DNA from: Rebecca billardiae RCC1528
Taxonomy: Eukaryota > Protista > Haptophyta
Direction: 5' to 3'
DNA length: 64,000 nt
Assembly: GCA_965240325.2 (NCBI GenBank)
Contig: OZ251233.1
Coordinates: 1,984,001-2,048,000 of the forward strand
Position numbers and translations under genes: made by a program. The notes below the pieces were generated by a model. The model had not been told where the DNA came from. It did no database searches and worked only from the letters and a program-made list of their open reading frames with translations. Shown here in pieces: positions 21,351-55,455 of the stretch (position 1 is the stretch's first letter; every line of letters starts with the position of its first letter).

Positions 21351-21809
21351 AGCGCGCCTGAGCCGGTGACACGCGTTGCTGACGACGACGCTTTCTACAT
21401 TTCCCTGCAGCAGCCCGCCGGCGGGCCGGGCTGCGACGTCGACTACACCCTCATCCGCTTCATCGACCTGAGCGCGCTAGGCGGCGCGCTCACTCTCCAA
21501 GCCCCTCTTCTGCAGCTGCGCGCCGCTAGGCCGGTGCGCGGCGACGTGTACTACGACCTCATCTTCATCCAGGCGCCCACGCGGGCGCCCGGGGGCGACA
21601 GCCGCGGCTGTCGCTTCCCGCAGCTGCACGCCGCTAGGTCGGCAGGCGGCGACATCGACTACGACCTCAGCCTCATCCAAGTGCTTCACCGGAAGGCGCT
21701 CGGCCGCGGCGGCATCTGCCGTCGCCGCCGCGTGCCCCAGGCCGAGGCGGTGCTCCATCCCGCCCCCGCTCCCGTAGGGGGGCAGGGCTGCGGGTGGCGC
21801 ACTGCCTGA
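21099..21809 (+). CDS. Possible small secreted repeat protein, or a rearranged pseudogene
   Basis: ATG 21099 (or 21285) gives the signal-like MLALSHKLLLISSLVAVRAVLA. The ORF contains three diverged 'QL.AAR..GGD.DYDL..IQ' modules. No family recognised. Confidence 0.3.
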   Translation: MLALSHKLLLISSLVAVRAVLADAGTRQTRGADDGDDHYYDDDVHARPRGLACAFPSCRDGEMLALSHKLLLISSLGRAVLADASAPEPVTRVADDDAFYISLQQPAGGPGCDVDYTLIRFIDLSALGGALTLQAPLLQLRAARPVRGDVYYDLIFIQAPTRAPGGDSRGCRFPQLHAARSAGGDIDYDLSLIQVLHRKALGRGGICRRRRVPQAEAVLHPAPAPVGGQGCGWRTA

Positions 21810-25500: not shown

Positions 25501-26669
25501 GCAGTCGAGCGAGCGCGGGCGGCGACGCGCCCGCCGCCTCGTGCGCGCGCTTGAACAGCCGGTGCGCCAGCGCGCCGCCCGCCTCGTCGCGCGACGCGGC
25601 GTGCGTGACGAGCGGCGCCAGCGCGCGCAGCAGCTGCCCCAGCTCGTGATCGGCCGGCAGCGCCGAGAGCGAGGGAGGCTGGCCGAGGGCGCCAGAGTTG
25701 GCCGGCGCGCCCGGCCCGGCGCACAGCGCGCTCACCAGCCGCTCGAGTTGCGCGAGCAGCCCGCCGAAGCGCTCGAGCACGCGCGCGGTCGGCGCGCCAG
25801 CGCTGCCGCCGCCGCCGCCGCCGCCGCCGCCGCCCGGCTGCTGCGCGGCCGCGCCGGGCGGCGGCGGCGGCGGCGCGCCGTGCAAGCCGTGCTGCTCGGG
25901 CGAGCGCGGCGCGCCGCCGAGGCCCGCGGCGGGCTGCGTGAGCCGTGCGAACGCGTCGTACACGCGCGCCGCCGGCCGGTCGGCGGGCTGCCCCGCGCCC
26001 GCGGGCTGCGCGGGCCGCGGGCGCAGCACGTCCGGCAGCTGCGCCGGGTAGCGGCCCCCGACCTGCAGCGCGGCCGCGTCGTAGTAGGGCTGGCCCGGGC
26101 GCGTCTCGTGCGCCTTGCGCCGCGCGTCGAGCTGCGGCGCGATCGCGTCGTCCATGTCGCGCAGCGCGCGCTCCGTGGCGACGCGCTCGATCAGCGCGCA
26201 CCCGAGCTCGAGGTTGTCCGCGGCGACCGCCTGCGTCGCCTGCTCCACGAGATCGGCCGAGAGATTGGCGGCGGCGTGCTGCGGCGCCTGCAGCAGCGAG
26301 CGAAGGTGCGTGCCAATCGACACGCGGAGCGGCTCGCGGCACGTGACGAGCGCGAGGGAGGAGGCGAGCGCCTGCGCCATCTGCTGCGCCGCGCGGCGCA
26401 TCTCGCCCTCGTCCGGCTCGAGCGCGAAGTCCTTCGTCACCAGCTCGCGCGTCGTGATCGACGCGATCGTGACCGAGCGCTCCACGACAGGCGGCATGAT
26501 CTCCCGGAGCGCGCGCTCGAGCGCGGCGAGGGCGAGGCGCTTGAGGTGCGGCTGCGAGGAGAAGAGAGAGAGCGAGGGCGAGATGGAGACGAACGGGGCG
26601 AGCGCCTGCGCCAGCGCCGCCGACTCGGCAGACGCGCCGCTGCCGCCCGCACCGCCCGCGCCGCCGCCG

Positions 26670-26702
<33 letters not shown>

Positions 26703-28215
26703 CCGCCGCCCGCGCCGCCGCCCGCCGCGAGCGCGCCGAGCGCGGCGGCGAGCTGCGGCGACGCGAGCGCTGCGGCGGCGGCGGCGTGGCCGGCGGTGGG
26801 CTGCGGCGCGCTCGGCGGCGCGGGCTGCTGCTGCGGCTGCTGCGGCTGCGACAGCTGCGAGCCCGACGGCTGCCCGCCCTTGTCCGCGCACGCCGCCGCG
26901 CCGCCCGCGCCGCCGGCCGCGCCCAGCATGGCCGCCAGGTCAAAGTGGCCGCTTGGCCCGCCGCCGGGCAGCGGCGCCCCGCCGGCGGAGCCGCCCGCGG
27001 CGAGCTGCGGCGAGTGCGTGGCGGACGAGTCGACGGACGCGCCGCCCCGCCCCACGCCGTGCGCCATCAGCGCCGCCGCGTGCGCGCAGTGCGGCAGGTG
27101 CTCGTGCGAGAGACCCGCCGCACCCATCTCACGCCCGCGGTCGCCGCCTGGCACGACGTGCGCGCCTGGATGCACCGTCGTCGGCGCGCCGAATGCGCCG
27201 AGCGCGCCGAGCGCGCCGCCGGGCCGCGCGCCGGGCCCGCCGGCGGGCCCGCCGGGGGTGTGCGCGAACGGCGAGAAGCTCGGCGCCGCGTTGAGCACCG
27301 CCGCCTGCGACGAGCCCCCCCGGTTGGTGAAGTCGTAGTTGCCCGTGCGGTCGACCGCCACGCCCGCGAGCGACGCCGTCGGCCGGATGTCGGCAAGCTC
27401 GACGCCAATGGCTTTGCAGAGCACCTCGATCTCGAACTTGAGGTTGAGCTTGAGGTCGGGCACGTGGTACACCTCGACGAGCAGCGCGAGCAGCGCGGCG
27501 AGCCACGGGTTGGGCAGCCGGAACACGCTCGAGTGCCGGCTCGCGTCGAGGACCTTTGTGACAAACGGGATGACAGCGATCAGAAACCCCTTGGCGTACG
27601 CGTCCGACACGAGCCGCTTCAGGTCGAGCTGCCGCTGCAGCAGCGGCCGGTTGCGCCCGAGCGTGAGCATGCCGAGCCACGCGCCGAGGTTCTTGAGCAG
27701 CGAGCGCTCGCTCCACGACGTGCGGATCCGCGCGCTCTTGAGCAGCACCAGGATCGAGTCGAGCGTGCGGCGCAGCACCTCGCGCTCGAACTGGCGCGAG
27801 CCCATGCCGAGCAGCAGAGACAGGTAGGTCGGGTGGAAGTTGGACTCGGCGGCGACGCGCTTCACGACGAGCATGTGCGCGAACCACTCGAGCGCGGGCG
27901 TGTCGCGCCGCTCGACGAGCGCGCGCAGCGTGTTCGCCTTCACCCCCGTGTTCTCCGCGTTCAGGTTGTTCAGCTCGAACGAGCACTTGTCGCGCACCTC
28001 TTCGGAAGGCTGCGGCACCGGCGCGCGGCGCTCCGCCTCGACGAGAGGGTTGACGTCGGGGCGCGAGCCGAAGCCGTCGCCGCCGCCGAGCTCGGCGGCG
28101 GCGGCGGCGATCTCGGAGGAGGAGGGGAGCAGCGAGGTCGCCGACTTGGAGTGGCCCACGGGCGGCGGCTGCCCGTGCCCGAGCGCGCTGCCGCCGCCGC
28201 CGCCGCCGCTGAGCA

Positions 28216-28246
<31 letters not shown>

Positions 28247-28643
28247 GCCGGCGTGCGCGTGCGTCGCGACAGGCATCGAGAAGGATCGATGCGGCGAGAT
28301 GACGCTGGCGACGCCGCCGGGCGGGCTCGCGCCACTGCCGCCGCCGCCGCCACCACCACGGCCGAGCAGCCCGCCGAGCCCGGGCGCGCCGCCGCCGCCG
28401 CCGCCGGGCGCGCGCGCGCCGCCGCCGCCGCCGCCGCCGCCGCCGAGCGCGCCGCTCGCAGCGTGCGGCAGCTGGAAGGGCGGCGCCTCCGTGTTGACTC
28501 CGGGCGGCGGCGTGGGCGCGTGGCCGACGGAGCCGGGCGGCAGCTGGCGCGGCGACGAGCGCAACTCGCCGCCGCGCCCGCCCGGCGGCGTGCCCGCGAG
28601 CGGCGCCGCCGCCGGCCGCGGCGACGCGCTCGCCGAGCCGGCC

Positions 28644-28682
<39 letters not shown>

Positions 28683-29268
28683 GGCGCTGCGCCCTGCGGC
28701 GGCTGTGGCCCTCCGAGCAGGGAAGCGATGGCGGGGTCGAGCTCGGCGGGCGGCGCGCCGAGCGCGGGCGGCGGCACGGCGGGCGGCGCGCCGTCGCGCG
28801 CCGCCTCGATCATCCCGACCAGCTCGGCGTGCGCGCCGCGCAGCTGCCCCAGCGCCAGCAGCTGAGCGCAGTACTGAGGCCACTCGGGGACACGCCACCA
28901 AAACTGCGCGAGCGCGAGCACGCCAAAAGCAAACATCTTCGAGCCCGGCGGCTTGCGCAGCGCCTCGAGGACGTAGCGCAGGAACATGCCCAGCGTGATC
29001 GACGCGACCAGCTCGTGCTGGATCAGCATGCCGAACAGCAGCGCCGTCGTGCGCAGGAACCGGTCCGGGTACTTTGGGAAGAAGCGATATTCCTCGAACA
29101 GGTTGTGCACCACGCACGCGTACACACCCTGCGCGCGCCCGTCGGACGCGGAGCCCTTGAGGGCGGAGAGGTGCGCGACGAGCTGCTCGACGCGCATGTC
29201 GCCCGTGTACACGCGCTGGAAGTACCCGTTCGCCTCCGCCTCGATGTCCGCGGGGAAGCCGTCCGCCG

Positions 29269-29300
<32 letters not shown>

Positions 29301-32300
29301 GGCAGTGCGGCGAGGGCGCCCAGCCCGCTGCCGACAGTCTGCGGCGCGGGCTGCGGCGCGGGGCCCGGCGCGAGCTGGTGCGGCGCGGCCGAGCCGCCCG
29401 CGGACGACGGCGGCGCCGGCGCCGCGCCCGAGCTGTGCATCAGCCCGGACGGCGGCACGTGCTCCACCGAGCCGCCGTGCAGCGCACCAGACGACATGAG
29501 AGGCGAGCTGCACTCGGCGCTGCCGCCGCCGCCGACGCAGCACACGCCCGGCGGCGCGGCGGCACCCATACCGATGGAGGCGCCGACGGCGTGGGCGCGG
29601 GTGAGCTCGTCGGCGGCGGGGAGGCCGGGCGGCGGCTTGCTCAGCGAGTCGTCGCGCAGCGCGTCGAGCAGCGCCTGCCCGCCCACGGCGACGCCGGAGC
29701 CGACGGCCGAAGGCGGCGCGCCGCCCAGCACGGCGCCGCCGCCCGCCGCCGCGGCCGCGCCGAGCGCAGATGTGGCCACGGCGGTCGCGGCGGCGGCGGC
29801 GGCGGCGGCGGTCGCGCCGCCCGGCGTGTACTGCAGCAGCCGCGCGACCTGCGGGTGCGCCGTCACCGCCGCCGCGCACAGCTCGTCCAGCGCCGCCGCG
29901 TCCACGCCGGACGCGTCCGCCTCCGCGCCGCCGCGCGCCGCGCCGCCGCCAACGCCGCCGCCGCCGCCGCCGGGCGCACGCGCCGCCGAGTGCGCGCCGA
30001 GCGCCGAGAGAATGGCGCCGAGGGCGTCGATGTCGACGGCGTCGGGCCGCGCGAGCTGCGCGCGGACGAAGCCGACGCACGCGCGCGCGAACGGCGCCCC
30101 GCGCGCCCCCAGCGCCTCGCCCAGCCACGGCCCAAGCGCCAGACCGTCCCGGCGCGCCGCGACCGCCGCCATGTGCACGGCCAACGCCGGCCGATCCGCG
30201 TCGCCGAGCGCGTCGACGAGCGCGCCGTGGCGGCTGAGGAGCTCGTGCGCGCGCTCGTCGGCGCCCGCGCCCGCCATCGCGTCGAGGAGCGCGCCGCGCG
30301 CGCGCGGGCCCGCGCGGAGCACCGCGCTCACCGCCGCGCCGCCCGCCGCGCCGCCCGCGTCCGCCCAACGCCCGCCATCCGCCGCGACCAGCGCGCCCAG
30401 CGACTCAAGAGCAAAGAGGCGCGCGGCGCGCGGCGGCGCGGCGGCGACCTCGGCGAGGGCGCAGGCGAGGACGGGCGCGCAGAGCCGCGCGGGCGCGCCG
30501 CCGCCCGCGTTGAGCAGCGCGCGCACCTCCGACGCGTGCCCCGCGCCCGCCGCGCGCGCCGCCGCGCGCGCCAGCTCGACGCAGCGCCAGCGAGCCGCGG
30601 CGCGCGCGTCGGCGCACGCGCCCAGCAGCGCGGCGCGGCCGGCGGCGGAGTCGTCGCCGACGGGCACGGCGAGCGCGCCGGGCGCGGCGGCGGGGTCGGC
30701 GAGCTCGGCGGAGCGCAGCGCGGCGCGCAGCGTGCGCAGCAGGCCCGCGCCCGCCGGCGCGGCCGCGAGCAGCCTGTGTAGTGGGAATGGCGCCCCTGCC
30801 TTGCCCGACGCGTGCGCGTGCGCGCCCACAAGCAAGCCAAGCGCCGCGTCGTCTGCCGCGTCCGCGGCCGCGTCGCCCGCGTCGGCGGCGCGCGCGGGCA
30901 GCACGCCGGAGGGCTCGGCGCCGAGCGCGCTCACCACCGCGTCCCAGTCCAGCGCGGGCACGAGCTGTCGCACAACGTCGACGAACACGCGCGCATCCCA
31001 CGACGCAACGCCGCCGCCGCCGCCGCCACCGAGGGCGCCAGAGCGCGCGGCCGCGGCGCCAGCGGCTGCGCCGCCGCTGCCGCTGGCACCGGCCTTGTCG
31101 GCGAGGTTGCCCGCGGGCTGGCCGAGGATCACCTCGCCCGACACGGCGGCGACGAACGCCGCGTGCAGCGCGCCGCCGTCCGCGCTGCCGCCGCCGCCCT
31201 GCGCGCGCGCCATCATTGCCAGAGCGGCCGCCACGCCCGCGGGGCCAAGGTGCGCCGCGGGCTCGAAGCGCGAGACGACCTCGGCGAGCGCGGCGTGCGA
31301 GGCGGTGGCGGCGGGGCCGAGGTCGTGGAGCACGTCGGCCAGCGTGACCAGCTCCACCGCGCTCCCTGCCGCCGTCGCGGGCGTCAGAGCCAGCTCAGCC
31401 GAGCGCGGCGCCGCGCCCGCGCCCCCGGCGAGCGTGGCGGCGCGCGCGTCCGCCGCCGACAGCGGGCCGGCGCTGCCGCCGCGGCGCGCGTTGTACTCCT
31501 TGGCGGGCGCGTCGTGGAGCAGCGGCATGAGGTGCAGCGGGCACGCGTCCGCGGGGAACGCCGCGCCCAGCGCCGCGAGCAGCGGCGCCCGAAGCTTCGC
31601 CAGCCCGTCCTCAGACAGCGCGTGCTGCGCGAGCGCGTGCGCGTCCGACGTGCTGAGCAAAGGCGGCGCGCCGCCATCGGCCTTGGCGACGAGCTCGGCG
31701 ACGCGCAGGCCGAGGAGGCGCGAGGCTGCGCGGCGGCGCGGCGCGGCGCGGCGCGCGGCGCGCGGCGCGCGCGAGCGCGTCGGCGCCGGCCGGCCGGGCG
31801 GGTGTGCGCGTGTGTGTGTGCCGGCGGCGCGAGCGCGGCGCGCGGCGCGGGGCGCGCGGCGCGCGCGCACCCTCGGCGCGCGTGGAGGTCGAGGCCGCGC
31901 GCGAGAGCGCGATCAGCGCGCGCAGCTCGTGCGCGCCCGTCAGCCGCGCCGCCGCGCACAGCGCGCCGAGCCACTCCTCAGAGAAGCCGCCGCCCGCAGC
32001 GGCCGCGCCCTCCAGCACTTCCATGGCTGCCGACGCGGCGCGGCCCGAGGCAAGGAGCTTGGCGAGCGCGCGGCCGAGCAGGGCGGCGCGCGCGCTGCCG
32101 CCGGACTCCTTCGCCTGCCGCGCCTCCGCGCGCACGTCCAGCCCGTCCAGCAGGCAGCGCAGCTCGTGCACGAACGCATCCTCGCCGTAGAGGGCCACCA
32201 GCTGCCGACGGAAGCGGCCGCGGCGCGCGCGGTCGGCGCGGGGACGGCGCGGAGGGCGGGGCCCGCGGGGGCGGGCGGGCGGGCGGCGTGTGGGTGGGTA

Positions 32301-34429: not shown

Positions 34430-37400
34430 TCAGTGCTCGGACGCGCCGTCTGCGTATCGCTCGGGCAGCATGAGCCGCAGGTCGGCCTCGTCCACCATCG
34501 AGACAGCGCGGTCGAGCAGCCCCGCCGAGGCCATCGACGCCCCGTGCGTGCCAGTGAGCACCTGCGCTTGCCAGGCCTCAGTGGGAGCCGGCCGGCTTGC
34601 GCAGGCAGCGCCGTTGGCGACGAGCGCCAGCGGCGGCGGCGGCGGCGGCGGCGAGGTCAGCTTCCCCCCGGCCTGCGCGAGCGCACCGTCCGGCGCGCCG
34701 GGCGCCGAGGCCGCTGCGCCCGTGCGTGGCTCCGCACCCGCCGCGTGCTGGCGCGCTCCCGGCCCCTGGCCGGCCAAAGCGCCAGTGGGCGCCGCGCGCC
34801 GCGGGGCGGGAGCGCGCGGCGGCGCAGCTCGACGGGTCAGGCCTGCGCTGGCAGTGCGGAGGGCGGCGGGCGGCGGCGCCGGCGGCCGCGCGGGGGCGGG
34901 CTGGGCGGAGGCCGTGCCCACAGCAAAGCACGGCCCGGCGCTGAAGGACTGCAGCAGCGGCGCTGGGCCAGCCAATGAGAGCCCCGAGTGGGCCAGCCCC
35001 CGCCCGCAGCCCGTGGCGCCGCCGCCTGCGCCCGCAGCCAGCGGCACGCAGCAGAAGCCGGCGGCGTGCGGCATGGCGTGCGACGCGGGCGGCGGGCGGT
35101 GGTGGCCCGCCCCGACCGGCGCGCCCGCCGGCGTGCAGCGCGCGTCGGCGGGCGTGAAGACGATGGCGGCGGGCGTGAGCGGCGGCGGCGCGCCAAGCAC
35201 GGCGCGCGGCGAGTGCGCGCCGCCCGCCACCGCTAGCCCGCCCCCTCCGCTGCCGCTGCTGGCTGCGGGCTGAGGGCTTGGGCGCAGGTCGGAGCCGGCG
35301 AGCGCCCGGTCGATCAGCCAGCGCGCCTCGCCCGACGCAGCGGCGCGCACACTCGCAGCGCGCGCCGCCGCAGCCGTCGAGCGCTTGACGGGCGGCTGCG
35401 CCGGCCCGTCCGCGGCCGCCTCCGCCGCCTCCGCCGCGGCTGCGGCGGCTGCGCTCCTGTCTGTCGGCGCGGCCGCGCGGGCTGGGCCCGATGGCGGCGA
35501 CGCGCCGGCGCCGTCCTGGCCGGCGGCGTGCGGCGCGGGCGCGCCCGCGCATGCGGCTGGTTGCACCTCAGACGAGAGCTCAGACGAGAGGGGTGTCTCC
35601 GTCGGCCGCCGGCCGCGCGCGCCCGGCGCGGCCGCCCTCCGCTCTCGCAGCGCGCGCGCGGCGGCTGAGCCGCGCGCGCCGGCCGCGGCGCGCGCCGCCG
35701 CCGCGCCTCTCGGCTGCCGGCCGCGCGTGCCGTGCGCCGCCGCAGCCGCCGCGGCCGCGTCTGCGCGCGCTCGCTGCGTCGCCGCAAGCCGCTCGCTCAC
35801 GCGGTGCGCCGCCGTCGCAAGCCACGAGAGGCGCACCTGCGCGAGCGCCGACGCGGCGGGGGCGCGCGGGCGCATGAGGCACGGGCGTGGGCGCGCAGCA
35901 CACTCCTCGGCGCGCGCCGCGCGCGCTGGCTCTGCGCACGCGCGCCGACGCTGGGGTGCGCCGACGCGCCGGGCACCGCTCGCTTCACTGCGCTGCGCTG
36001 CGCTTCGCTGCGCTTCGCTGCGCTTCGCTGCGCTTCGCTGCGCTGCGCTGCGCTGCGCTGCGCTGCGCTGCGCTGCGCTGCGCTGCGCTTCGCTGCGCTG
36101 CGCTGCGCTGCGCTGCGCTGCGCTGCGGGCGCTGCGGGCGGCGCGCACCGCTCCGCGCACTGCGCGCGCGGGCGTACCAAAAACTCGAGCACGGGCGGCG
36201 AGGCCTCGACGCGCGCGTGCGTGTACAGCACCAGCACGCCCACGAGCGACTGGTCGTCGCGCAGGAGCGGCAGCGCGATCGCCGTCTGAATCGGCGGCGG
36301 CGCGCACAGCCGCTCCTGGCCCGCCTCGCCCGCCTCCGCGCCCGCCTCCGCCTCGGCCGCGCTGCCAGCTGTACACTTGTCGCAGCCGGCGCGCGCCACG
36401 CCGCCGTCAGGCGCGCCCGCGGCGGCATCAGCCGCAGCCGCATCAGCGCCGGCTTCGGCCCCCACCAGCCCCGGCGGCCGCGCGGGCTGCAGCTCGACCA
36501 GCCCCGCCTCCGTCTGCGCGTGCGCCCACACCATCCGCCGCTCCCGCAGCACGCGGTGACAGAGCGCCGCCGAGGGCGACGCGCACGTGCAGCCGGGGCG
36601 CACCCAGCACGCGGCGGCGGTGGCGCCCGCGGCGGCGAGCGTGGTGGTGCCCGGCGGCGCGGGCGCGGGGCCGAGGGCCGCGGGCTCGAGCGCGTACGCG
36701 CTCGCCATCGCCTCCGTGCAGCACAGCCGCACCAGCGTCGGCACCCTCGCCACCTCCGCGGCGCTGCGCTCGCGCATGGACTGAAGCCGCCTCTGCAACA
36801 CCTCGGCAGTTGACTCTGCGCCCGCCTCGGCGGCGGGCGGCGTGGGGGCGGGGCCGAGGCGCGAGGCGCTGGGCGCGGCGTGCGGCGACGCCGCCGTCTC
36901 CGACGCAGGCGCCCACGCCACCGCGCCCGAGCGCTCAACCTCGGCTGCGCCGCTGTCGAGCGCGCTCGGCGCGCCGTCCGCGCTCGCGGGCGCGCCGGGT
37001 CGGCCGTCACTCGACGCGGCCGTGCCGCTGCCGCCGGCCTGCTCGCTCGGCTTGTGCGCGAGCGAGAAGGACCAGACCTCGCCGACGCACGCGCCGACGC
37101 CGTGCGCGGCGACCTTGAGCGCCGCCGCGAACGCCTCGCCGCACGCCTCCTGCACGCCCGCGAACAGCCTGGGCGCGCGCACGTGCGCCGCCTCCGCAGC
37201 CGCCGCCTCGGGCCGGCGGTGCGCGGCAAAGCGCAGGCTGTGCGCGCACGGCCGCGCGGCGACGGCGCAGCCCGCGATCGAGGCGGCGAGCTCGAGGAGC
37301 TGCTTGACGTGGAGGTCCTCCGACACCCGCTCGAGCGCGTAGAACACCATCGCGCCCGCCGCCGGACCGCTGCCCGCCGCCGAGGGCACGGGGACGGCGA

Positions 37401-38363
37401 TGGCGGTGTGCGCGCCCACGCCGCCCGCTGGGAGCAGCGCAGGCCCGGCCGGCGGCGCGGCGCACCACGCGACGCCGCGCGAGCGGAGGACGGCGCCGAC
37501 GAGCTGCGTGCTGAAGGGGTGCGATGCGCCGGAGCCCTCGCCCACCGCGATCACGAGCCGCGCGTCCGCCGCGACGGACGACGCGACGAACACGTGCTCA
37601 CACACCAAACCACTCGGCGCGTCTGCCGCGGCCGCCGTGTCGCGCGCGGGCGCGGCCGTGCCTGCGGCGGCGGCCGTGCCGGCGGCGGCGTCGGCTGGCT
37701 GCACGCGCCACATCTCGGCGATCGCGAAGCCCGCGAGCCCGCATACGAGCTCGAGCAGCTCCGTCACCGTCTGCGTCAGACCGGAGCAGGGCGCGGCGAC
37801 GCTCAAGTCGCCGTCATGCCTGCGGCTGAGCTGCGCGCACGTACGGCCGCCGTCGGGCGTGTCGGGTACGTCGCGCTGGCGCTGGCGCCGGTTCTGGAAC
37901 CTGCGCGCGCGGCAGGCGGGTAGCGCGCGCGCGCGCCGCGAGCCCCGCGTCCGCATGTCAGCCTCCGTCGCGCCAGTGCCGCCGCGCGGCTCCGGGCGGC
38001 CGCCGCGCAGTGGTGCGCCGCGGCTGGCGCACCAGATTTGTATCTGGCGGCGGGAGAGCTGGAGCGTCTCGGCAAGGCGGGCTCGCGTGGCGGCGTCCGG
38101 AAGGGGCTCAATGTCGAATGTCGCCTCGAGCGTGCTGCCACGCAGAGGGGGCGCGGGAGGCAAGGGGCGTGAGTTTGCGCGCGCGCGCGTGCGCGCATCG
38201 CCCTCGGCCGCGGAGAGCACGGCCGAGCGCCGCGCATGCACCTGCGCTGGATGGCGGTGAGCTGCAGGCGTGCGCCGGCAGCCTTTGCGCCGTCATCCGT
38301 TGGCTCTGCCGACGAGGCCTCGGCGATGGATGCCTCTTGCAGCGCGCGCTTCTTGCGCGCCAT
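34430..38363 (-). CDS. Homeodomain transcription factor with two GAF-like domains (~1117 aa, 4 exons)
   Basis: Exons 38363-38242, 38134-38033, 37900-36178, 35836-34430. Splicing rebuilds RLQLTAIQRSTLEATFDIEPLPDAATRARLAETLQLSRRQIQIWFQNRRQR. Two 'AE.W ... L...V......W ... TAIA.P....G..V.Y' GAF-like segments follow. Confidence 0.85.
35988..36127. repeat. (CGCTG/CGCTT)n pentamer microsatellite in intron 3 of the homeobox gene
   Basis: About 28 tandem pentamers seen directly. Confidence 0.95.
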
Positions 38364-45034: not shown

Positions 45035-48000
45035 ATGCGGCGAGAGCTCTGCACCGCGTTGCTGGTCCTGGCCCTGGCTGTCGTCGGCGTCGCCGCGGGC
45101 CCTCCTCTCCCGCCTCCGAGCCCGCCTCCGCGCGCGCCCCCGCCGCCGTCCTCGCCGCCGCCGCCGGTCTCCATCCCCGAGTCGCTGCCGCGGCAGAACC
45201 TCGCCGAGCTCCTGAACGCCGCCGCCGCCGCGGGCAAGGCGGCCACCGACACGGCCGAGGTCGACCTGTACCACGAGCACGTTGGCGCGATGCTGCTGCA
45301 GGCCGACCTCCCGACCGACACCGTCGTCGGCCTCCGCCCTCGACTCGTCGGCTCCGGCGACGAGGCGGTGGAGATCGACTCGTGGGCCATCCTGTGGCCC
45401 GACGCGATCGCCAAGGCGATCGAGAAGGTGAAGGAGTACGTCGAGGCGAGGGGCGACTATGACATGCCGCCGGTATACGCCCTGCCCTCCGAGCTCGCGC
45501 GGCACGCGCTCGAGCAGCTCGACAAGGACCAGGGCTCGGCGCGCACGCGCTTCCGCTGGCTCAAGCCGGGGCAGGAGGCAAACCTCACGCGCGCGGACGT
45601 GGAGCCGCAGCACAACGTGCGGATCCCGCGCGTGCTGGGCATGCCCGTCGCGATCCCCAAGGTCGGCACCAACCTCAGCCTCGTCGTGCTCAGCGGCGTC
45701 GACCCGCCGCGCCGCCGCCGCGCGCTGCGCGACGCGCGCGGCGCCGAGCTGCCCAGAGCGAAGACAGTGTTTGGCCTGCGCCGGTACTCGGTGGAGGAGG
45801 CGGAGGGCGGCGTGGTGAGCGTGCAGAACGGGAACGCGCTCGGCTCGGCGGTGTCCGGCGCCGCCGTCGCCGCCGTCCTCGCCTCAGTCGTCGTCTCAAA
45901 CGTCGCGTCCGTCGCCGCGGCGAGCGGCGGCTCGGCGGTCGCGCCTCCGCACGGCGGCGGCGGCGCGCTCAAGACAAGCGCGCTGCTCATCTCGCAGCTG
46001 CAGTACATGCACGTGCTCTCGTTCGCGCCGGTGGACGTGCCGCTCGCGTACCGCTCGTTCCTCGCCACGCTGCAGTGGGCCAACGGCTTCCTCGGCGTCG
46101 GCGCGGACGACCCGCTCGCCAGTGCGGGCGAGCGCACGTGTCCGGCGCTGGCGGCGGAGCGCGGCGTCGGCGCGCCCGCCGCCGGCGACCCATCCGACCA
46201 GCACGTGCAGGCGACGCTGGACTCGTCGGCGTTGGCCTCGCCCGAGGGGATGTGGCTGGTGCACGTGCGCCTGCTGCTCCTCGCGCTCGCGCTCACGCTC
46301 GCCGCCTCGCTCGGCCTGCAGCTGCTGTACACGCCGACGCGCGCGGAGGCGGAGGCGGAGGGCGAGCGCGGCGGCTGGGTGGCGCGCGTGCGCGCCGCCG
46401 CCGTGCCTGCGTCGATCGCGCCGCCCAAGCCGCAGGCGGTGGTCGGGTTCCTCTTCTTCCAGGGGAGCGTGCTCGCCTCGCTCGTGCTCATCACGCGCGG
46501 CCCGTGCCACGACGGCTACCTCGCCGGCGCCATCGTGCTGCTCGCCCTGGGGCCGCTGTGCTTTGGACTCTGGGTGGCGGCTACTCTGCACTTCACGGTG
46601 CTGCGCGCGCAGGTGGTGCGCTGGCGGCCGTTTGACCTGCGCGCGCTGCGCGAGATGGCGCGCGCGGCGAAGCAGCCGGCGCCCGGCAGCTCCGCCGCCG
46701 CGCGCATCCTTCCGCGCAAGCTGAAGACGGGCGCGTCCGCCGAGCCGGCGGCGCTGGCCGGCGGCGCGGAGTCGGCTGAGGCGCCCGCGGCGTCGGCAGC
46801 CGTCGGCAGCGCGGGGCGGCGGCGGGCCTCGTCGTTCAGCGCCGGGCGCGCGGGCGCCGGCCTCGCCAGCACCGCGAAGCGGCTGATGCGCGCGTCGGAG
46901 ATGTTCGCGCACAGGGGCGAGTGGGTGCCCACCGAGCTGGCCGGGCAGCACGGCGCGCTCGACCTCGCGGGGCAGCACGGCTTCGCCCTGAAGGACCGGC
47001 TGGGCATGCTATTTGAGCAGCGCACGCGGCCATGTGTCTTCCACCTGTCCTTTGAGCTCGGGCGGCAGGCGGCGCGCGTCGTCGCGGTGGTCGCGCTGCC
47101 CGGGCTGCTCGTCAGGCTGGGCGGCATGCCGGCGCCGCGCGCCGTGCTCGCGACGGGCGGCGCGCTCGTCGGCCTCGAGCTGCTCGACCTGCTGCTCGTG
47201 GCGGCGCTGCGCCCGTTCGCGGAACGTTCCGAGAACCTCACGCGAGGGCTGCTGCCGTTGCTGCGCTCGGCGCACATTGTCGCGCTGTTCGCCGGGAGCT
47301 GGCTGGGCTGGGTGGATGCGCGGATCGGCACGCTGGCGCTCGTCAACCCGCGGCTGCACGCGCTCGTCGTCGCCGCGCCGCAGCTCGCCGCGCTGCTCGC
47401 GCTGTTCCTCAAGTGCGCGCTCGAGACAGCAGCTGACGTGCGCTCGCTGCGCCGCCGCGTCGCCGAGCGCGTGCACGCGGCCCAAGTGGTCGCGCTGCTC
47501 GAGGCGCACGGGCTCGGCGGCGAGGGCGGGCTCGACGCCGAGGGCGGGCACGCCGGCTCGCCCGCGTGGCCCCCGCTCCCGGACCCGCTCCCGGACGGCC
47601 TGGTGCGCTCGGACGTGCTGCTGCTCGCGCACGCGGCGCTCGCGCTGCTCGCCGTCACGCACCCGTTCGGCCAGGCGGTCGTGGTCGGCGCGGCCAAAGA
47701 AGAATACGTCCGAGCGTTCCGCGAGCGCGCGGCGCACCCGGGCGCGCGCACCTGGCTGCGCCGCGCCGCGCCGTGCGCGCCGCCGCGGGGCGCGTACGGC
47801 GCGACCGCGTCGGCGCGCGCGGAGGCGCACGGCGCCGCGCTCGAGCGCATGCAGGCCGCTTTGCTGGAGCGCTGCCGCGTCGAGTTCCTGATCGAGGTAG
47901 ACTTGGGCCGCGCGGGCGAGCGCGACGGCACGGCGGCCGCGGCAGGGCGGCTGCTCGTCGGCGCGCTGCACGGCGCGCTGCAGGCCGACGCCGTCGACGC

Positions 48001-48490
48001 GGTGGTCGCGGCGGCGCAGCTGCGCGGCGTGCACGAGGCCGCGGCGCTCGCGCTCGGCGAGGCACTCGTGCCCGCGATCGGCCACACGCTGGACGGCTCG
48101 CTGCGCCGCGCCGCCAGCGCGGCCCTCGCGGCCGTGCTGCCTCCGGACGAAGTGGTGCCCACGCCGGCGGAGCTGGCTCCCGCGGACGGCGGCGGCGACG
48201 CGGCCGCCTCCAGGCCAGGGCGCGAGCGCGAGGGCGAGGCGCCGGGCTGCGCCGTGGCGGTGCGCGCGGCCGTCGCGCGCTCGCGCGAGCTCGCCCGCCG
48301 GCGCCACCGCCACCGTGCCGCCGTGGTGGGCACGGCCGACGCGAGCCACTCCCACGCCTCGGCCGCCGCCAGCCCCCTCCCTCCCGTCAAGTTCGTCAGC
48401 AAGCCTCCGCCGCCGCCCGACAGCCCGCCGCCGGGCGTGTGGCAGCGAGGCCAGTCGGGGGGCGCCGGGATCGTGGGCGGCGGCGGCTGA
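45035..48490 (+). CDS. Secretory-pathway multi-pass membrane protein of TRP-like/FLC (PF06011-like) type, 1151 aa
   Basis: Signal peptide and Pro-rich (SPPP) ectodomain. ISQLQYMHVLS..PVD.P.AYRSF...LQWAN and DRLGMLFEQ...F.L.RQ...LRPF motifs. About 8-9 hydrophobic segments. Confidence 0.65.
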   Translation: MRRELCTALLVLALAVVGVAAGPPLPPPSPPPRAPPPPSSPPPPVSIPESLPRQNLAELLNAAAAAGKAATDTAEVDLYHEHVGAMLLQADLPTDTVVGLRPRLVGSGDEAVEIDSWAILWPDAIAKAIEKVKEYVEARGDYDMPPVYALPSELARHALEQLDKDQGSARTRFRWLKPGQEANLTRADVEPQHNVRIPRVLGMPVAIPKVGTNLSLVVLSGVDPPRRRRALRDARGAELPRAKTVFGLRRYSVEEAEGGVVSVQNGNALGSAVSGAAVAAVLASVVVSNVASVAAASGGSAVAPPHGGGGALKTSALLISQLQYMHVLSFAPVDVPLAYRSFLATLQWANGFLGVGADDPLASAGERTCPALAAERGVGAPAAGDPSDQHVQATLDSSALASPEGMWLVHVRLLLLALALTLAASLGLQLLYTPTRAEAEAEGERGGWVARVRAAAVPASIAPPKPQAVVGFLFFQGSVLASLVLITRGPCHDGYLAGAIVLLALGPLCFGLWVAATLHFTVLRAQVVRWRPFDLRALREMARAAKQPAPGSSAAARILPRKLKTGASAEPAALAGGAESAEAPAASAAVGSAGRRRASSFSAGRAGAGLASTAKRLMRASEMFAHRGEWVPTELAGQHGALDLAGQHGFALKDRLGMLFEQRTRPCVFHLSFELGRQAARVVAVVALPGLLVRLGGMPAPRAVLATGGALVGLELLDLLLVAALRPFAERSENLTRGLLPLLRSAHIVALFAGSWLGWVDARIGTLALVNPRLHALVVAAPQLAALLALFLKCALETAADVRSLRRRVAERVHAAQVVALLEAHGLGGEGGLDAEGGHAGSPAWPPLPDPLPDGLVRSDVLLLAHAALALLAVTHPFGQAVVVGAAKEEYVRAFRERAAHPGARTWLRRAAPCAPPRGAYGATASARAEAHGAALERMQAALLERCRVEFLIEVDLGRAGERDGTAAAAGRLLVGALHGALQADAVDAVVAAAQLRGVHEAAALALGEALVPAIGHTLDGSLRRAASAALAAVLPPDEVVPTPAELAPADGGGDAAASRPGREREGEAPGCAVAVRAAVARSRELARRRHRHRAAVVGTADASHSHASAAASPLPPVKFVSKPPPPPDSPPPGVWQRGQSGGAGIVGGGG

Positions 48491-48971: not shown

Positions 48972-51900
48972 ATGGTGCGCCTCGTTACCGCCGCGCTGCT
49001 GGCGGCGTTGGCGGCGTTGGCGGCCCGTCCGGCGGCGGGCGAGGCCGTGCTCCGGCTGGGTGTGGTCATGTCGCTCAGCGAGACCACCCCCGAGCTGGCC
49101 GTCGCCACGCTCAGCGCCATCGACCGGTGGAACAGCGCGCCGCCGTGCGGCGCGCGGCTCGAGCTCGTCGCGCGGCTGTACGACACGCGCGGCGACGAGG
49201 GCGACGGGCTGCGCGCGCTCTTCGAGGCGCACGCCGCCGGCGCGAGCGTGATCATCGGCGCCTACCGCTCGGCGGTCACGCTCGCCATGGCGCGCGCCGC
49301 CTCCCACCTGCCGGTCGTGATGGTGTCGCCGCGCTCGACCGCGCCCGCGCTCTCCGACCGCGCGGCGCTGCCCTACTTCGCGCGGACGGTGATGTCGGAC
49401 GACGTGGTGGCGCTGGCGATGGTCGCGCACATCGTCGACCACGGCTGGCGCCACGTCGGCCTCGTCCACGTGGACGACCCCTTTGGCCGCGGCCTCGCGG
49501 ACGCGATTGCGCGCGAGGCCGCGGCGCGCCGCATCACGCTCGTGCGCGCGGGCTTTGCGTTCGACGCGGACGACGAGGCGCTGCGCGGCGCGATGCGGCA
49601 GATGGTCGGGATCACGGGCGAGCCGCTGCGCGTCCTCATCGTCATCGCCTTCAGCCGCCACCTCCGCCCGCTCGCCGACGGCGCCGCCGCGGCCGGCGTG
49701 GCTGGCCCGAGCGGCCACGTGATACTGAACGGTCCTGAGGTCGTGCAGCTGCTGCCGGCGACCTCGCCGAGCGAGCGGCGGCTGCTGCACGGCAGCGTGC
49801 TGGTCGAGGCGACGGGCGACGACGGCTCCGGCCGCTTCGAGCGCTACCTCAACGAGACCTGGCGCCGCATCGACGCGGCGAGCGTGAGCGCGTCGCTGCC
49901 GCCACACGTCGGCTCCACGGCCAACGTGAGCGCGCTGATCGAGGCAGGCACGCCGCCCACGACGGTGATGTTCGCGGACGAGGCGGTGGAGGCGGTGGGG
50001 CGCGCGGCGTGCAACGCGAGCGCCGGCGCGCCCGCCGGCGCGCCCGACGCCGACGCGCTCATCGCCGCGCTCGACGCGCTGCGCTTCGAGGGCGCGTCAG
50101 GCGTTGTGCGCTTTGACCGGCACGGGGCGCGCGCGCTCGGCTCGGCGCCCGTGCGGCTCGTGAGCGTGCGGTACGGCGGCGGCGGCGGCGGGGCGGGCGC
50201 GCCGGTGCTGGTGCCCGTCGCGTTCTTCGGCGCGGGCGGCTACGGCCCGCCCCTCGCGCCGCTGCTCTTCGCCAACGACCGCGCCGAGCCGCCGGCCGAC
50301 GGGCAGGCGGCGGTGCTGATCCGCGTCGGCCTGCTCGGCCGCTTCTGGGGCGAGCCGACGCGCCGCGGCGAGCGCAGCAAGCTCGCGACGGCGCTGCTCG
50401 CGGTGTCGCACTTCAACGCGCGGAACGGCACGTTCGCGCCGGTCTTCGCCGCGCTGCGCGACGAGGGCTGCGACGTCGTCCTCGACCCGCGCCCGCTGCA
50501 CTCCGAGGGGCAGCGCGCGAGCGGCGTCGAGGCGTATTTGGCCGGGCGAGCGGGAGGGTGGGATGTGCTCGTGGGCGCGGCGCGCTCGGCCGTGTCCGAG
50601 CCGGTGGCGACGCTGGCGGGGATCCACGGCATGCCGATGGTGAGCTACTGGAGCACCGCGCCCAGCCTCTCCGACGCGCAGGTCTACCCCACCTTCGGCC
50701 GCACCATCCCGAGCGACTACAACATCGCGCGGCTGGTGGTGGGCTACGTGCGGCAGTGGGGATGGACGCGCGCGGCCGTGCTGCACGTGAACGACGTCGC
50801 GGGCGCGGCGTACGCGCAGGCGCTGCAGCGGCACGGCGCGGGCGCGGGCGTCTCGTTCAGCATCATCCCGTTCACCGAGGGCGACCCCGCCTCCGTCGCC
50901 GACGCGCTCGACAAGATGACCCGCGACGAGTACACCATCACCGTGTGTCTCACCTTCTTGGCGGACCTGCCGGTGATCGTGCGCAACGGCACGGCGCGCG
51001 GGCTCTTCTCGCCGAGGCAGCACTGGATCTTCACGGACATGATCGGCCCGAGCGAGTACGGCGCGCTGCTCGAGCCGGACGTCGCGCTGCCGCTGCTGGG
51101 CAGCGTGCAGACCGAGGCCGCCGGCGGCTGGGGCGCGCCCGCGTGGGAGCGGTTCCGCGCGCAGTGGGCGGCGGGCGCGCTCGCGCCCGCCTCGGAGCTG
51201 AACGCATACCTGCCGCCTGAGGGGCAGCTCGGCGCGGCGTGGTGGGAGGCGGACGAGCCGAACGACATCGACGCGCTCACGTACGACGCGGTCGCCACGA
51301 TGGGCCTCCTCGCGTGCCGCGCCGAGCGCGACCCCGTCGGCTGGCCCGTGCTGCCGCGCCAGGCGTGGTGGCGGCACGGCGCGCTCGCCGCCGGCTTTGA
51401 GAGCGTGACGGGCGCCGTGCACTTCGACGCGCAGAGCGGCGACCGCTCGATGGAGTCGTCGCGCTTCACGGTGCGCGGCTTCATGCCGGGCACGCCGCAC
51501 CTCGACGTCTCCGTGCGCGGCTCCTTCGTCGACGGCGCGTGGCGCTTCCACCTGCCCATCGTCTTCGCCTCCGGGGCGAGCGAGCCGCCGGCAGATCGGC
51601 CCGAGGCGGCGGCGGCGGCGGAGGCTGCGTCCGGAGCGAGGGGCGGCGGCGGCGGCGGCGGCGAGGGCGAGGGCGAAGGCGATGGGAAGAGCGTCGTCAC
51701 GACGGTGGTGGTGCAGGACGACCGCGCCGCCATCATCACCGCCGCCGCGACGATCGCCCTCGTCGCCGCCGCCTTCGCCACGCTGCTCCTCTGGTTGCGG
51801 TACCGCGCGGCCAGGCGCAGGCTCGAGGGCGCGGCGGCGGCGGCGGAGCGCGCGCCGCCGCCCGTGCCGCTGCTCGTGATCTGCGACGCGGGCGAGGACC

Positions 51901-54900
51901 TGGACGACGAGATGGCGCTGCTGATGGCGCACATGCTGCAGGCCGAGGGCCGCATCGAGCTGCTCGGCGTGATCGCCAACCTCACCCCCGCGTACGAGCG
52001 CGCAAGGCTCGTGCGCGGCACGCTGGACGTGCTTGGGCTCCAGCACGTGCCCGTGGGCATTGGCACGGACGGCGGCAGCATGGCGCACGGCGCGGGCTTC
52101 CTCGAGAGCGCGGAGTACGCGACGGCGGTGGCGTCGCAGCGCGCGCGGCAGCTCGAGCCCGGCCGCGCGCTGCTCTACCGCGTGCTCTCCGCCGCGCCGC
52201 CCAAGTCGGTCACGCTGCTCTGCATCTCCTCGCTCAAGGACGCGGCGCTGCTGCTGCGCGACAACGCGGCGCTGTGCGAGGACAGGCTGGCGCGCGTAGT
52301 GGCGATGGGCGGGGTGGACGTGGAGCGGAGCCGGGCGGAGCGCGTGCTCGTGCCCGACTCGGCGCACAACAACGTCTTCGACTCCGGCGCCGCCGAGTAC
52401 TTCTACCGCGGCTGCAGCGCGCTCGCCATCCCGGTGACCATCGTCTCGAGGCACGCGGTGAGAGGCGGGCGAGCGCGCGCGGCCGCGCGAGCGCGCGCAC
52501 CCGCGGAGCCGGCGCGGAGCGAGCGCGCAGCACCGCCGCTCGCCGCCCCGCTCAGCGCGCTCCGCCGCGCGCCGCCCCCCGTGCGCCCCCGCGCCGCCCC
52601 GCCAGGCGTACGCCGCGCCCGTGCCGCGCGTCATCTACGACCAGCTCGCGCAGAGCGGCAGCCCGATCGGCTGGCGGCTGCGCAAGGCGCAGCGCGACTC
52701 GATCGAGGGACTGTGGCGGCGCGCGGCCGCGCCGCCCGGCTCGGCCGAGCGGCGCGGGCTCCCCGAGCGCTGCGACGCCGCGTGGTTCTCCGCCACCTTC
52801 TGCGGCGGCACCATCGAGCCCGAGGGGCGCTCGGCGGAGGACCCGATCTGGGACCTCGTCGTCGGCTTCAATCTGTATGACGTGGTCGCGCTGCTCGCGT
52901 GCGTGCCGGCACTTCGGGACGAACTGTTTGAGCCGCTCGCGCTCGGCTCGCTGCCGTGCCCCGAGCCCGCCGCCGACGCCGTCGCGCCGCCGCGGCTCTC
53001 CACCGTCGAGTCCGAGGCGGAGAGCGTCGGGCCGGGCGTGCCGTGGGCCGCCTCGCGCGCCGCCTCGCACCGCAGCCGCGCGACGAGCGCCGCGTCGCAC
53101 GGCGGCGGCGACGACGGCAGCGCGTCCGCGCCGTCGGTGCCGCGCGCGCCGTCGCTGCGGGGGTTGACGGGGCGCGCGCGGGGGCGGGCGATCTCGGTGT
53201 GGAAGCGCTCGCTCCAGCTCGCGCCGCTCTCACAGACCGCCGAGCAGGACCGCCTCGCCGCCGCCGAGCTGATCGGCGAGTCGGAGCAGGCGTCGGGCGT
53301 GCGCGATGGCGCCGCGCTCAGCGAGCTGATGCGGGACCGGATCGCCGCGTCGGTGGGGGCGGGGTCTGGCGGCGCGGCGGCGGTGAAGGAGGTGGTGGTC
53401 GTCGTGCTGCGCGAGGACGCGGCGGGCGTCTCGACGCACGGCGCGGCGCTCACGCTCCTCGCGCTGCGCGCGCTGCTCGAGTTCAACGCGCTCGACTGCG
53501 CCGCGCTTCTCGTGGTCCGGGAGCGGTGGCAGCGCTCAGGAGGTGCCACGGCCGCGGCCGCGGCCGCGGCCGCGGTGGCCGCGGCCGTGGACGGCGGCGC
53601 GACGCCGCGGGCGGGCGCGGGCGCGGGCGGCGTGGCGGACGCGCCGGACGCCGCGGCCGTGCCCTCGCAGACCCTCGAGACCGCCGAGGAGCTCGGCATC
53701 GTCACCGCCGGCTCCGTCCTCCTCGGCGACGACGACGTGAGCGCGGAGGGCGGGGGGTCGCTGGAGGCGCTCGCCGCGCGCTTTGCCCAGCTGCCGGCGA
53801 GCGGCGTGCGGCTCGTCGTGCCCGCGGGCGTGCCGCGGCTGCTCGCGCGCTTCGCGAAGGTGCACGCGAAGCTGCTGCGAGAGAAGGTCGCCGAGGTCGT
53901 CGGCGTGATCGCCGAGGTGGCGCCGCCCGCGCACGAGCTCTACTCGGCGCGCGCCCCGCCGCAGCCGGCCGACGCGACGGGCGGCGGCGCGGCGCCCGGC
54001 GTAGCCTCCGGGGCGGCAGAGTCGCCGCCGGTCTCGCCTCAGCACGCGGCGGTGCAGCGCGAGCGCACCGCCTCGGACTGGGAGCGCGCCCTCGAGCGCT
54101 TCCGCTCGAGCGCCTGCGAGCCGAGCGCCGCCCTCGACACCGAGCGCTCCGACGCGTCCGGCCCCCCGGCCGTCGGCGCGCGCGCGTCCGCGCTCTGGCA
54201 GCAGAGCAACAGCGAAGGACGGCGCGGGCGGCGCGGCAGCGCGCCCACAGTGTTTCACAGGGCGGGGACGGCGGTGACGCTCGGCCGCGCGTCCGCCCCG
54301 TCCTCCCGCGCCTCGGACGCGCGCAGCAGCAACGTCTCGCGCACCACGCGCACCAGCTACACCTCGCGCGCGAGCTTCGCCAGCTCCGTGCCCACCTCCG
54401 TGCCCACGACCAACCGAAGTGACACATCGGCGGAGAGCGCCGCTCGGCGCGCGCGCCGCGGCTGGGGCCGCGGGATGGTGCCGTGGGTCGCGGACGCGTC
54501 GGCCGCGCGGAGGCCCGCGCACGAGCAGCCCCGGCTGCCGCCGATCGTGAGCTGCGGCGAGATGCGCCTGTCCGCCTCCAGGCTGATGGCGCTCGCCGCG
54601 CACGCGGAGCGCGCCTCCGCCGCGTCCGCTGCCGAGCGCGAGCGGTCGCCGACCGACAACCATCGGACCTCGACTGGCGCCGGCGCCGGCCGGCCGACGA
54701 GCGGTGGCGGCGGGCGCGGGCCGAGCGCGCCGATCGTGCTCGTGCCGCCCGCGCCCACGCGCTACCCCAGCACACCCGGCGAGCACTTCAGCCGGCGGTG
54801 CGCGCGGCTCGGCGTGCCGATCGTCGGTGCGCCCTCCGCGCTCGTGCGCGCGTGCGCGCTGCCTCGCTCGGTGGTCGACGCGCTGCTCGAGCTCTCGGGC

Positions 54901-55455
54901 GACTTTGGGCGGACGATGCACGCGCGCGTGCGCACCAAGGTGGAGACGGCGCTGCGGTACGCGGCGGGCAGCACCGCGGCCGAGCAGCCCGAGGGCGGCT
55001 GGCACGCGCGCGAGTACGGCGCGGCGGTCGCGTCCGCCATCGACGCGTGGGAGGCTGTGTCCTATCTGCCCGCGTACGGCCCTGTCGCGCTGCTCGCGGT
55101 CGCGCAGCGCTCGTGCGCGACGCCGCTGTTCGGGCTGCAGCCGGTGGCGCTGGTGAGCGGCGCGTGGCACCACCAGCTCGAGCCCGTGCCGCACGCCGAC
55201 GCCGCCAGCGTCGTCGCCGCCATCGCGCACCTGTGCCTCAAGGCGGCGACGCTCAACACGCACGCGCTCAACGCGCACGCGCCGCCGCCCTCCGCCGCGG
55301 ACGGCGACACGCGCGGCCGGGGCGTCGAGTGCGCGGGCGTGGGCTGGGTGCCCCTCGGGGACACGGTGCCCGCGTGGCTCGCCAGCAGGTCCGCCGCGGG
55401 CGCCGCCGAAGACGAGGCGGCGGAGGGGCGTGCCCACCAGCGCCAGAGGGTCTGA
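48972..55455 (+). CDS. Single-pass receptor: signal peptide + 2 Venus-flytrap (ANF_receptor/PBP1) domains + TM + XopQ/HopQ1-like nucleoside-hydrolase-fold domain + degenerate second copy (~2111 aa, 2 exons)
   Basis: Exons 48972-52457 and 52606-55455, intron GTGAGA...CCAG (148 nt). VFT1: IIGAYRSAVT...STAPALSDRAALPYFARTV.SD...GWRHVG...F.GASG.V.FD..G. VFT2: LVGAARSAVS...STAPSLSDAQVYPTFGRTIPSD...GWTRAAVL...YDAV...FESVTG.V.FD..GDR. TM at ~51730-51800, then VICDAGEDLDDEMAL. Confidence 0.88.

Follow-up and report, generated by a model that had tools for sequence, protein, structure and literature searches.

A gene on the forward strand at positions 48972-55455 of a 64,000-nucleotide stretch of the haptophyte Rebecca billardiae RCC1528 (contig OZ251233.1, positions 1,984,001 to 2,048,000; hereafter the window) is best read as encoding a type I single-pass membrane protein. 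The predicted protein carries two tandem Venus-flytrap (VFT) modules outside the cell and, after one transmembrane (TM) helix, a hydrolase domain of the HopQ1-like protein (HLP) clan, followed by a second, degenerate copy of the same domain. The literature searched yielded no description of ANF_receptor combined with IU_nuc_hydro or of receptor-type HLPs, and the VFT-HLP pairing was observed once in the data reached. An initial annotation of the window, made from its letters without database searches, had stated that no described receptor of this architecture was known, which agrees with the outcome of the protein and literature searches, and had called it a candidate new class of receptor enzyme. 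The architecture is indeed undescribed, whereas the domain itself is not new, algal HLPs being a clade already described (PMC6019455). Domain clan, algal presence and flytrap module are thus all known; what is new is the architecture and the use of HLP as the output of several receptor types.

The third-position GC pattern resolves the coding region into two exons, 48972-52457 and 52606-55455, which together hold 2,111 codons plus the stop; open reading frames (ORFs), the periodicity of G+C content at third codon positions (GC3), start and stop were read directly. Translation starts at the ATG at 48972, the first start after a stop, and ends at the TGA at 55453-55455. The ORF opened by this ATG is 1,302 codons long and its sensible translation ends at residue (aa) 1162, while a second ORF in the next frame becomes sensible from about position 52606 and continues to the TGA. 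GC3 lies at 0.93-1.00 in the first frame in all 300-nt blocks of 48972-52571 and at 0.94-0.99 in the next frame over 52572-55271, the frame change falling exactly at the intron. The blocks directly outside the gene have no GC3 periodicity, the GC3 profile reveals no long non-coding stretch within either exon, no notable repeats occur inside the gene, and its coding signal exceeds chance by far.

Exon 1 (aa 1-1162) is uninterrupted up to a GTGAG donor, exon 2 contributes 949 codons plus the TGA (GC3 0.94-0.99), and the 148-nt intron between them (52458-52605; GTGAG...CAG) is of the GT-AG type. The splice junction was tested exon by exon, each exon being searched separately against uninterrupted relatives, and the intron is defined by these relatives because four independent comparisons place the exon ends at adjacent positions. 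In the NCBIfam XopQ profile exon 1 covers positions 49-254 (E 1.1e-21) and exon 2 positions 255-367 (E 8.6e-18); in the XopQ chain 7jlu_B they cover residues 117-322 and 323-432; and in a family profile built from 100 uninterrupted homologous domains they cover nodes 4-207 (E 1e-79) and 208-316 (E 2e-47), the last residue of exon 1 aligning to XopQ residue 322 and to node 207. The exon ends also map to adjacent nucleotides in 15 homologous metagenomic loci (tblastn). A single stop-free ORF takes in the flytrap pair, the TM helix and the first two thirds of the hydrolase; with the same frame and the same extreme GC3 running from the flytrap pair into the hydrolase, the earlier assignment of both halves to one gene is borne out.

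The first HLP domain is divided by the intron into an N-terminal two thirds (aa 958-1162; 51843-52457) and a C-terminal third (exon-2 aa 1-111, protein aa 1163-1273; 52606-52938). It belongs to the HLP clan, with a nucleoside-hydrolase fold, the DxxxDxDD motif that marks HopQ1-like proteins where canonical enzymes have DxDxxxDD (PMC11685791), and a closer resemblance to XopQ/HopQ1 than to the classical enzymes. The motifs quoted in the initial annotation are all present, namely DAGEDLDD at 51885-51908, RARLVRGTLDVLGL at 51999-52040, WF..TF at 52783-52800 and IWD..FNLYD..ALLA at 52846-52899. The four Asp of the first, putatively Ca-binding motif (972, 976, 978 and 979) all stand at the family's Asp columns, and the fifth conserved Asp, in NLYD (exon-2 aa 92, protein aa 1254; codon at 52879-52881), corresponds to node 297 of the profile, a position held by Asp in 144 of the family's 156 full domain instances. 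Domain 1 keeps all five Ca-binding or catalytic Asp, as do 124 of these 156 instances.

Profile, sequence and structure comparisons agree on the closest relatives of this domain. Exon 1 alone passes the gathering score of Pfam IU_nuc_hydro (PF01156; 39.4 bits against 34.2, E 7e-10), while the NCBIfam XopQ profile matches at E 1e-21 (exon 1) and 9e-18 (exon 2). A sequence search of the PDB with the exon-1 part returned XopQ at E 1e-19 against 2e-5 for the classical enzyme 1MAS, and the C-terminal third matched XopQ residues 323-432 at E 1e-11. An AlphaFold2 (AF2) model of aa 955-1162, built with 48 homologues, reached a predicted local distance difference test (pLDDT) score of 96.5, and in a Foldseek search of the PDB with this exon-1 model the top four matches were all XopQ, the best being the ADP-ribose-bound structure 4P5F (template-modelling score 0.85, E 1e-14). 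Classical nucleoside hydrolases followed from rank 5 (E 2e-9), and ranks 1-50 of the PDB listing were all proteins of the nucleoside-hydrolase fold. The preference for XopQ/HopQ1 over a classical IU-nucleoside hydrolase, for which a Foldseek ranking had been suggested as a check, therefore holds in all three comparisons. Assignment to the XopQ equivalog itself (NCBIfam NF041355), as an orthologue of the type III effector, was rejected; exon 1 scores 77 bits and exon 2 scores 64, where the cut-off is 500, and the gene is eukaryotic, with an intron and a predicted signal peptide and TM helix.

The ectodomain and topology were assigned from Pfam and PDB matches together with hydropathy, the latter for the signal peptide and the TM helix. 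A signal-peptide-like N-terminus (aa 1-23; 48972-49040), with a hydropathy peak at aa 4-22 after Met-Val-Arg, precedes VFT module 1 (aa ~27-443; 49050-50300) and module 2 (aa ~466-875; 50367-51596). Pfam ANF_receptor (PF01094) matches in two stretches with 176 bits and E 1.4e-51, well beyond its gathering score of 25.4 bits, its best stretch being aa 44-388. The two modules are paralogous (31% identity over 396 aa, E 5e-26); module 1 matches in the PDB a bacterial LIVBP-type binding protein best, together with GABA-B R2, mGluR2 and CaSR, and module 2 matches mGluR6, T1R1/T1R3 and GABA-B R1. Five N-x-S/T sequons lie in the ectodomain. An Ala/Gly/Glu-rich stalk read from the translation (aa 876-918; 51597-51725) leads to the single TM helix (aa 919-942; 51726-51797), which has a Kyte-Doolittle peak of 1.92 in a 19-residue window, and then to a basic juxtamembrane tether (aa 943-957; 51798-51842), whose end was set by the start of the domain in the profile alignment.

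Since the helix is followed by an Arg-rich stretch, with five Arg within eight residues, the C-terminal side is predicted to be cytoplasmic, and the first hydrolase strand follows the helix after a gap of only 24 residues. Hydropathy has one further peak, at exon-2 aa 84, which belongs to the core of the hydrolase. This layout supports what the initial annotation had read from the letters, that is, a signal peptide, two tandem VFT domains, one TM helix and a cytoplasmic domain, with the flytrap pair outside and the hydrolase inside. Two established receptor types were considered and rejected: a class C G-protein-coupled receptor (GPCR), there being no 7tm_3 Pfam match and one membrane helix by hydropathy, and a receptor guanylyl cyclase, there being no Guanylate_cyc or kinase Pfam match in either exon.

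The last ~740 codons had been overlooked in that reading. They hold another HLP domain, a degenerate one (exon-2 aa 208-835, equal to aa 1370-1997 of the protein; 53227-55110). It follows an Ala/Ser/Pro/Arg-rich inter-domain linker without profile match (exon-2 aa 112-207; 52939-53226), is split by a 292-residue Ala/Ser/Arg/Pro-rich insertion recognised from its composition and from the gap between two profile matches (exon-2 aa 434-725; 53905-54780), and is followed by a C-terminal tail with no Pfam or profile match (exon-2 aa 836-949; 55111-55452). Exon-2 aa 208-433 and 726-835 match, at E 3e-19 and 2e-15, a profile of 44 such second domains taken from homologous tandem proteins, and this profile aligns to the catalytic HLP profile with an hhalign probability of 100% (E 6e-84, 300 columns). 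The identity of the second domain rests on these profiles and not on the fold search; an AF2 model of its N-terminal half (pLDDT 74) gave no Foldseek match below E 0.01, XopQ standing at rank 3 with E 0.024, and direct BLASTP of domain 1 against the C-terminal region was marginal (E 0.009-0.06). The five Asp positions hold V, D, G, A and G, four of the five being lost, and we read the domain as a predicted pseudo-enzyme. Tandem HLP domains occur in 69 of the 212 collected family proteins, often with one degenerate copy.

HopQ1 and XopQ are 14-3-3 clients via N-terminal sites of their own. Exon 2 contains three R..[ST].P motifs resembling 14-3-3 mode-1 sites, at aa 542, 704 and 719, the first within the Ser/Arg-rich insertion and the latter two among its last 22 residues; the parallel may be a coincidence.

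An exhaustive HMMER search with the exon-1 part of the hydrolase against 1.84 billion representatives returned 962 proteins at E <= 1e-3, 98 of them at E <= 1e-30. These relatives are mostly metagenome or transcriptome predictions, Pelagophyceae sp. CCMP2097 and Prymnesium parvum being the named sources. Among the closest (59-67% identity), a membrane helix stands directly before the HLP domain in P0007, P0008 and P0023 and about 60 residues upstream of it in P0010, and the same order of helix, short tether and HLP recurs in P0001 at about 50% identity. P0008 (L002:1446-8471, on a Logan contig) is a protein of 2,341 aa in which a Laminin_G_3 and cadherin-like N-terminal region is followed by a TM helix, an HLP domain 59% identical to that of the window, and a degenerate HLP domain. 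Its N-terminal region is presumably an ectodomain; no obvious signal peptide is present at its N-terminus, so that the model may be missing sequence at its 5' end. Two proteins from ENA metagenome contigs (P0204 and P0207) combine a rhodopsin-type seven-transmembrane (7TM) region (7tm_1, E 7e-21, aa ~59-309) with a C-terminal HLP domain and, as judged from their sequences, would be GPCRs with a XopQ-like hydrolase tail; no description of a 7tm_1-HLP fusion was found. The TM-HLP cassette thus recurs behind a laminin-G/cadherin-like region and HLP also stands behind 7TM receptors, and because of this the receptor idea extends beyond one gene.

The HLP domain has further partners. They include three cyclic-nucleotide (cNMP)-binding domains in P0221, a sulfotransferase in P0086, TPR arrays in many proteins, and PH, ALO and TerB domains in one protein each. 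NUDIX enzymes commonly act on ADP-ribose (ADPR), and one family member (P0183) joins a NUDIX domain to two HLP domains; ADPR would be the product if an HLP domain opened a cyclic ADPR (cADPR) isomer. In P0094, P0171 and P0176-P0178, proteins of ~1,637 aa, a class III cyclase, AAA_16 and TPR repeats precede a C-terminal HLP domain, a STAND-like layout. The 90%-identity cluster of P0094 comprises 44 sequences, five of them full-length at 1,630-1,637 aa, and a genome scan found no close relative of it in bacterial and archaeal genomes.

The tandem flytrap ectodomain likewise occurs with other outputs, in P0002 (from a Nephroselmis transcriptome) and P0223, at 28-32% identity to that of the window, and algae seem to reuse the double flytrap as a sensor module. 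P0002 adds Cys-rich repeats and a TRP-type membrane region, and P0223 an ephrin-receptor-like Cys-rich domain. Because HLP and tandem flytrap each occur with other partners, both halves of the gene are regarded as shuffled modules. Searches for a second VFT-HLP protein, whose sensitivity is limited to exact words or peptide patterns and length windows, found none in word-indexed protein searches with the whole of exon 1, the hydrolase region and the flytrap region, none in a scan of JGI metagenomes, whose 11 loci each matched by the hydrolase alone, none by tblastn of both exons against 17 loci, and none in Pfam scans of 66 family proteins.

The biochemical background of the clan is recent. 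HopQ1-like proteins were set apart in 2018 as a clan of their own within the nucleoside-hydrolase superfamily, comprising a bacterial, a fungal/moss and an algal clade, Aureococcus, Thalassiosira and Emiliania being listed as algal carriers (PMC6019455). XopQ is monomeric and binds ADPR in an enlarged pocket (PMC8910321). According to a 2026 preprint it hydrolyses very efficiently the ribose-ribose bond of the TIR product 2'cADPR to give ADPR, has no activity on nucleosides, cADPR, 3'cADPR, pRib-AMP or 2',3'-cNMPs, and is inactive when the Asp residues are mutated (bioRxiv 10.64898/2026.06.15.732069).

From this architecture we infer that a ligand controls the enzyme and that the enzyme acts on a second messenger. 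The flytrap pair would bind an extracellular small-molecule ligand, and binding would alter the arrangement or activity of the membrane-tethered catalytic HLP domain. Domain 1 would be a Ca-dependent hydrolase of glycosidic bonds with an ADP-ribose-type nucleotide as its substrate, and not a plain nucleoside; this type of substrate is suggested because the hydrolysis of 2'cADPR by XopQ is the only activity in the clan upheld by the latest study. The dead second domain may act as a regulatory or pairing partner, comparable to the pseudokinase of receptor guanylyl cyclases. Overall, a small molecule outside the cell would govern how fast a nucleotide signal inside it is cleared at the plasma membrane. 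Taken as a whole, a ligand-controlled receptor hydrolase of an ADP-ribose-type nucleotide with a regulatory second domain has, in our estimate, an even chance of being correct, and a 2'cADPR-like substrate in particular is possible but rather doubtful.

Several points weigh against this proposal. The gene model is known from DNA sequence alone, coupling across a single helix is assumed by analogy, the C-terminal third of domain 1 is matched by sequence only, without a model joined to the rest, and identity to XopQ is only ~29%. The activity of XopQ on 2'cADPR rests on one preprint (bioRxiv 10.64898/2026.06.15.732069), and PMC11685791 cites an earlier claim of 2',3'-cNMP phosphodiesterase activity. 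The VFT-HLP fusion is, moreover, not established as conserved, because no second protein was found.

Among the alternatives, the two that survive best are both unlikely. The protein could be a non-catalytic receptor in which both HLP domains are nucleotide-binding or scaffolding modules that signal via partners. [quoted passage not shown]

With a similarly small probability, the gene could encode an immune sensor in which the flytrap pair detects a molecule derived from a microbe or virus and HLP makes or removes a defence signal, serving a conflict system and not everyday physiology. In the family HLP follows TPR, AAA_16 and cyclase modules typical of STAND-type sensors, the substrate of XopQ is an immune signal, and a haptophyte has receptor-like TIR proteins that react when it is infected by a virus (PMC12489294). 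Against this, the PADLOC models had no match to the hydrolase part or exon 2, a scan of IMG/VR with the HLP alignment found no HLP relatives by the pattern used, and the neighbouring genes are ordinary housekeeping genes.

A membrane-anchored salvage enzyme, with a hydrolase that cleaves ordinary nucleosides to recycle purines or pyrimidines and a flytrap pair that binds a nutrient without regulating it, we consider slightly less probable again. It would account for the Pfam IU_nuc_hydro score above threshold, the nucleoside-hydrolase fold, the descent of flytrap modules from nutrient-binding proteins and the bacterial binding protein that is the best PDB match of module 1. The domain belongs, however, to the HLP clan with DxxxDxDD (PMC11685791), whose tested members do not cleave common nucleosides and do not have the base-activating residues (PMC8910321, bioRxiv 10.64898/2026.06.15.732069); no transporter domain is present, and the binding modules and the enzyme are placed on opposite sides of the membrane.

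Least probable is an artefact in which a mis-assembly or two adjacent genes were taken for a single gene, for which speak the failure to find another protein of this combination, a gene known from DNA alone and the ease with which long ORFs arise on both strands in DNA this GC-rich, but against which stand the uniform frame and GC3 without a stop between flytrap pair and hydrolase and a TM helix with a short tether that matches independent homologues exactly; a protein starting at the hydrolase would be without this helix.

The surroundings of the receptor gene are those of a eukaryotic nuclear genome. The window has a G+C content of 62-82% and carries, on the reverse strand, a CNOT1 homologue with six CNOT1 and Not1 Pfam domains (23864-31912), a filamin-repeat/GEX2-like protein (9989-15367) and a homeodomain protein (35800-38292). 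Such ordinary neighbours speak against contamination or a mobile island, and a bacterial effector or contaminant was rejected on account of the intron and these neighbours. Neither a tRNA nor a further HLP or VFT copy was found within the window.

An ORF of 1,151 codons on the forward strand (45035-48490) ends 481 nt upstream of the receptor gene and has a signal-like N-terminus, a Pro-rich stretch, several hydrophobic segments and high GC3; it has no Pfam match. Coding regions in the window have a GC3 of 0.9-1.0, and long stop-free ORFs occur over every gene in several frames on both strands, for example one of 845 aa on the strand opposite the receptor gene; the mere length of an ORF is therefore no evidence of a gene here. 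A tandem repeat with a 186-nt unit (2.3 copies, 91% matches) lies in an intergenic-looking stretch at 20944-21357.

For two decades XopQ and HopQ1 were investigated as weapons that bacteria use against plants. The tethering of HLP to a ligand-binding surface receptor in a eukaryotic gene, together with its 7TM, cNMP-binding, NUDIX and STAND-type siblings, speaks for a native role of the domain in algal signalling, of which the bacterial effectors may be borrowed or convergent versions. The output enzymes of single-pass receptors form a short list of kinases, phosphatases and cyclases. If our proposal is true, it adds a new output enzyme to single-pass receptors and would suggest that bloom-forming phytoplankton, in which TIR genes were recently tied to virus resistance, have messengers derived from ADP-ribose. 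More speculatively, and in our view improbable as it stands, marine microalgae might use a 2'cADPR-like, TIR-derived nucleotide as a second or immune messenger whose removal is under receptor control, HLP then being the output of unrecognised 'receptor glycohydrolases' on flytrap, 7TM and laminin-G/cadherin sensors, erasers matching the receptor-like TIR writers. Even without a function, the architecture alone gives a concrete handle on the pathway.

Compared with known systems, the cytoplasmic part is nearest to the type III effectors XopQ, HopQ1 and RipB (PDB 4KL0, 4P5F, 7JLU), with which it shares the fold, DxxxDxDD and the C-terminal Asp and is collinear over XopQ residues 117-432. Unlike them, this protein is eukaryotic with an intron, is predicted to be tethered to a membrane receptor, and has a degenerate second copy and no secretion leader. 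The classical IU-, IAG- and pyrimidine nucleoside hydrolases (1MAS, RihA, YeiK) share the fold and the Ca-binding Asp, but have DxDxxxDD and match much more weakly, at E 2e-5 by sequence where XopQ reaches 1e-19, and at E 2e-9 by fold where XopQ reaches 1e-14. The algal HopQ1-like proteins described earlier are of the same clan, although that work covers the hydrolase domain only and has no transmembrane or receptor architectures, the word 'transmembrane' having 0 occurrences in it (PMC6019455).

On the receptor side, class C GPCRs (mGluR, GABA-B, T1R, CaSR) include the closest solved relatives of both flytrap modules, but this protein has one helix only, without the 7TM region and the Cys-rich domain. 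Natriuretic-peptide receptor guanylyl cyclases consist of an ANF_receptor ectodomain, one TM helix, a pseudokinase and a cyclase, and are likewise single-pass proteins in which a cytoplasmic enzyme is paired with a dead enzyme-like domain; here, by contrast, there are two flytraps and not one, the enzyme is a hydrolase of another fold, and the dead domain duplicates this enzyme and follows it. A further parallel, drawn by description, comes from a marine microalga, Gephyrocapsa huxleyi, whose TIR proteins respond to virus infection and in some cases connect a leucine-binding-like region outside the cell, through one TM helix, to a TIR domain in the cytoplasm (PMC12489294). Both would place a domain of NAD/ADPR chemistry behind an ectodomain and a single helix, but whereas the TIR output is likely a maker of the signal, the HLP domain described here is likely its remover.

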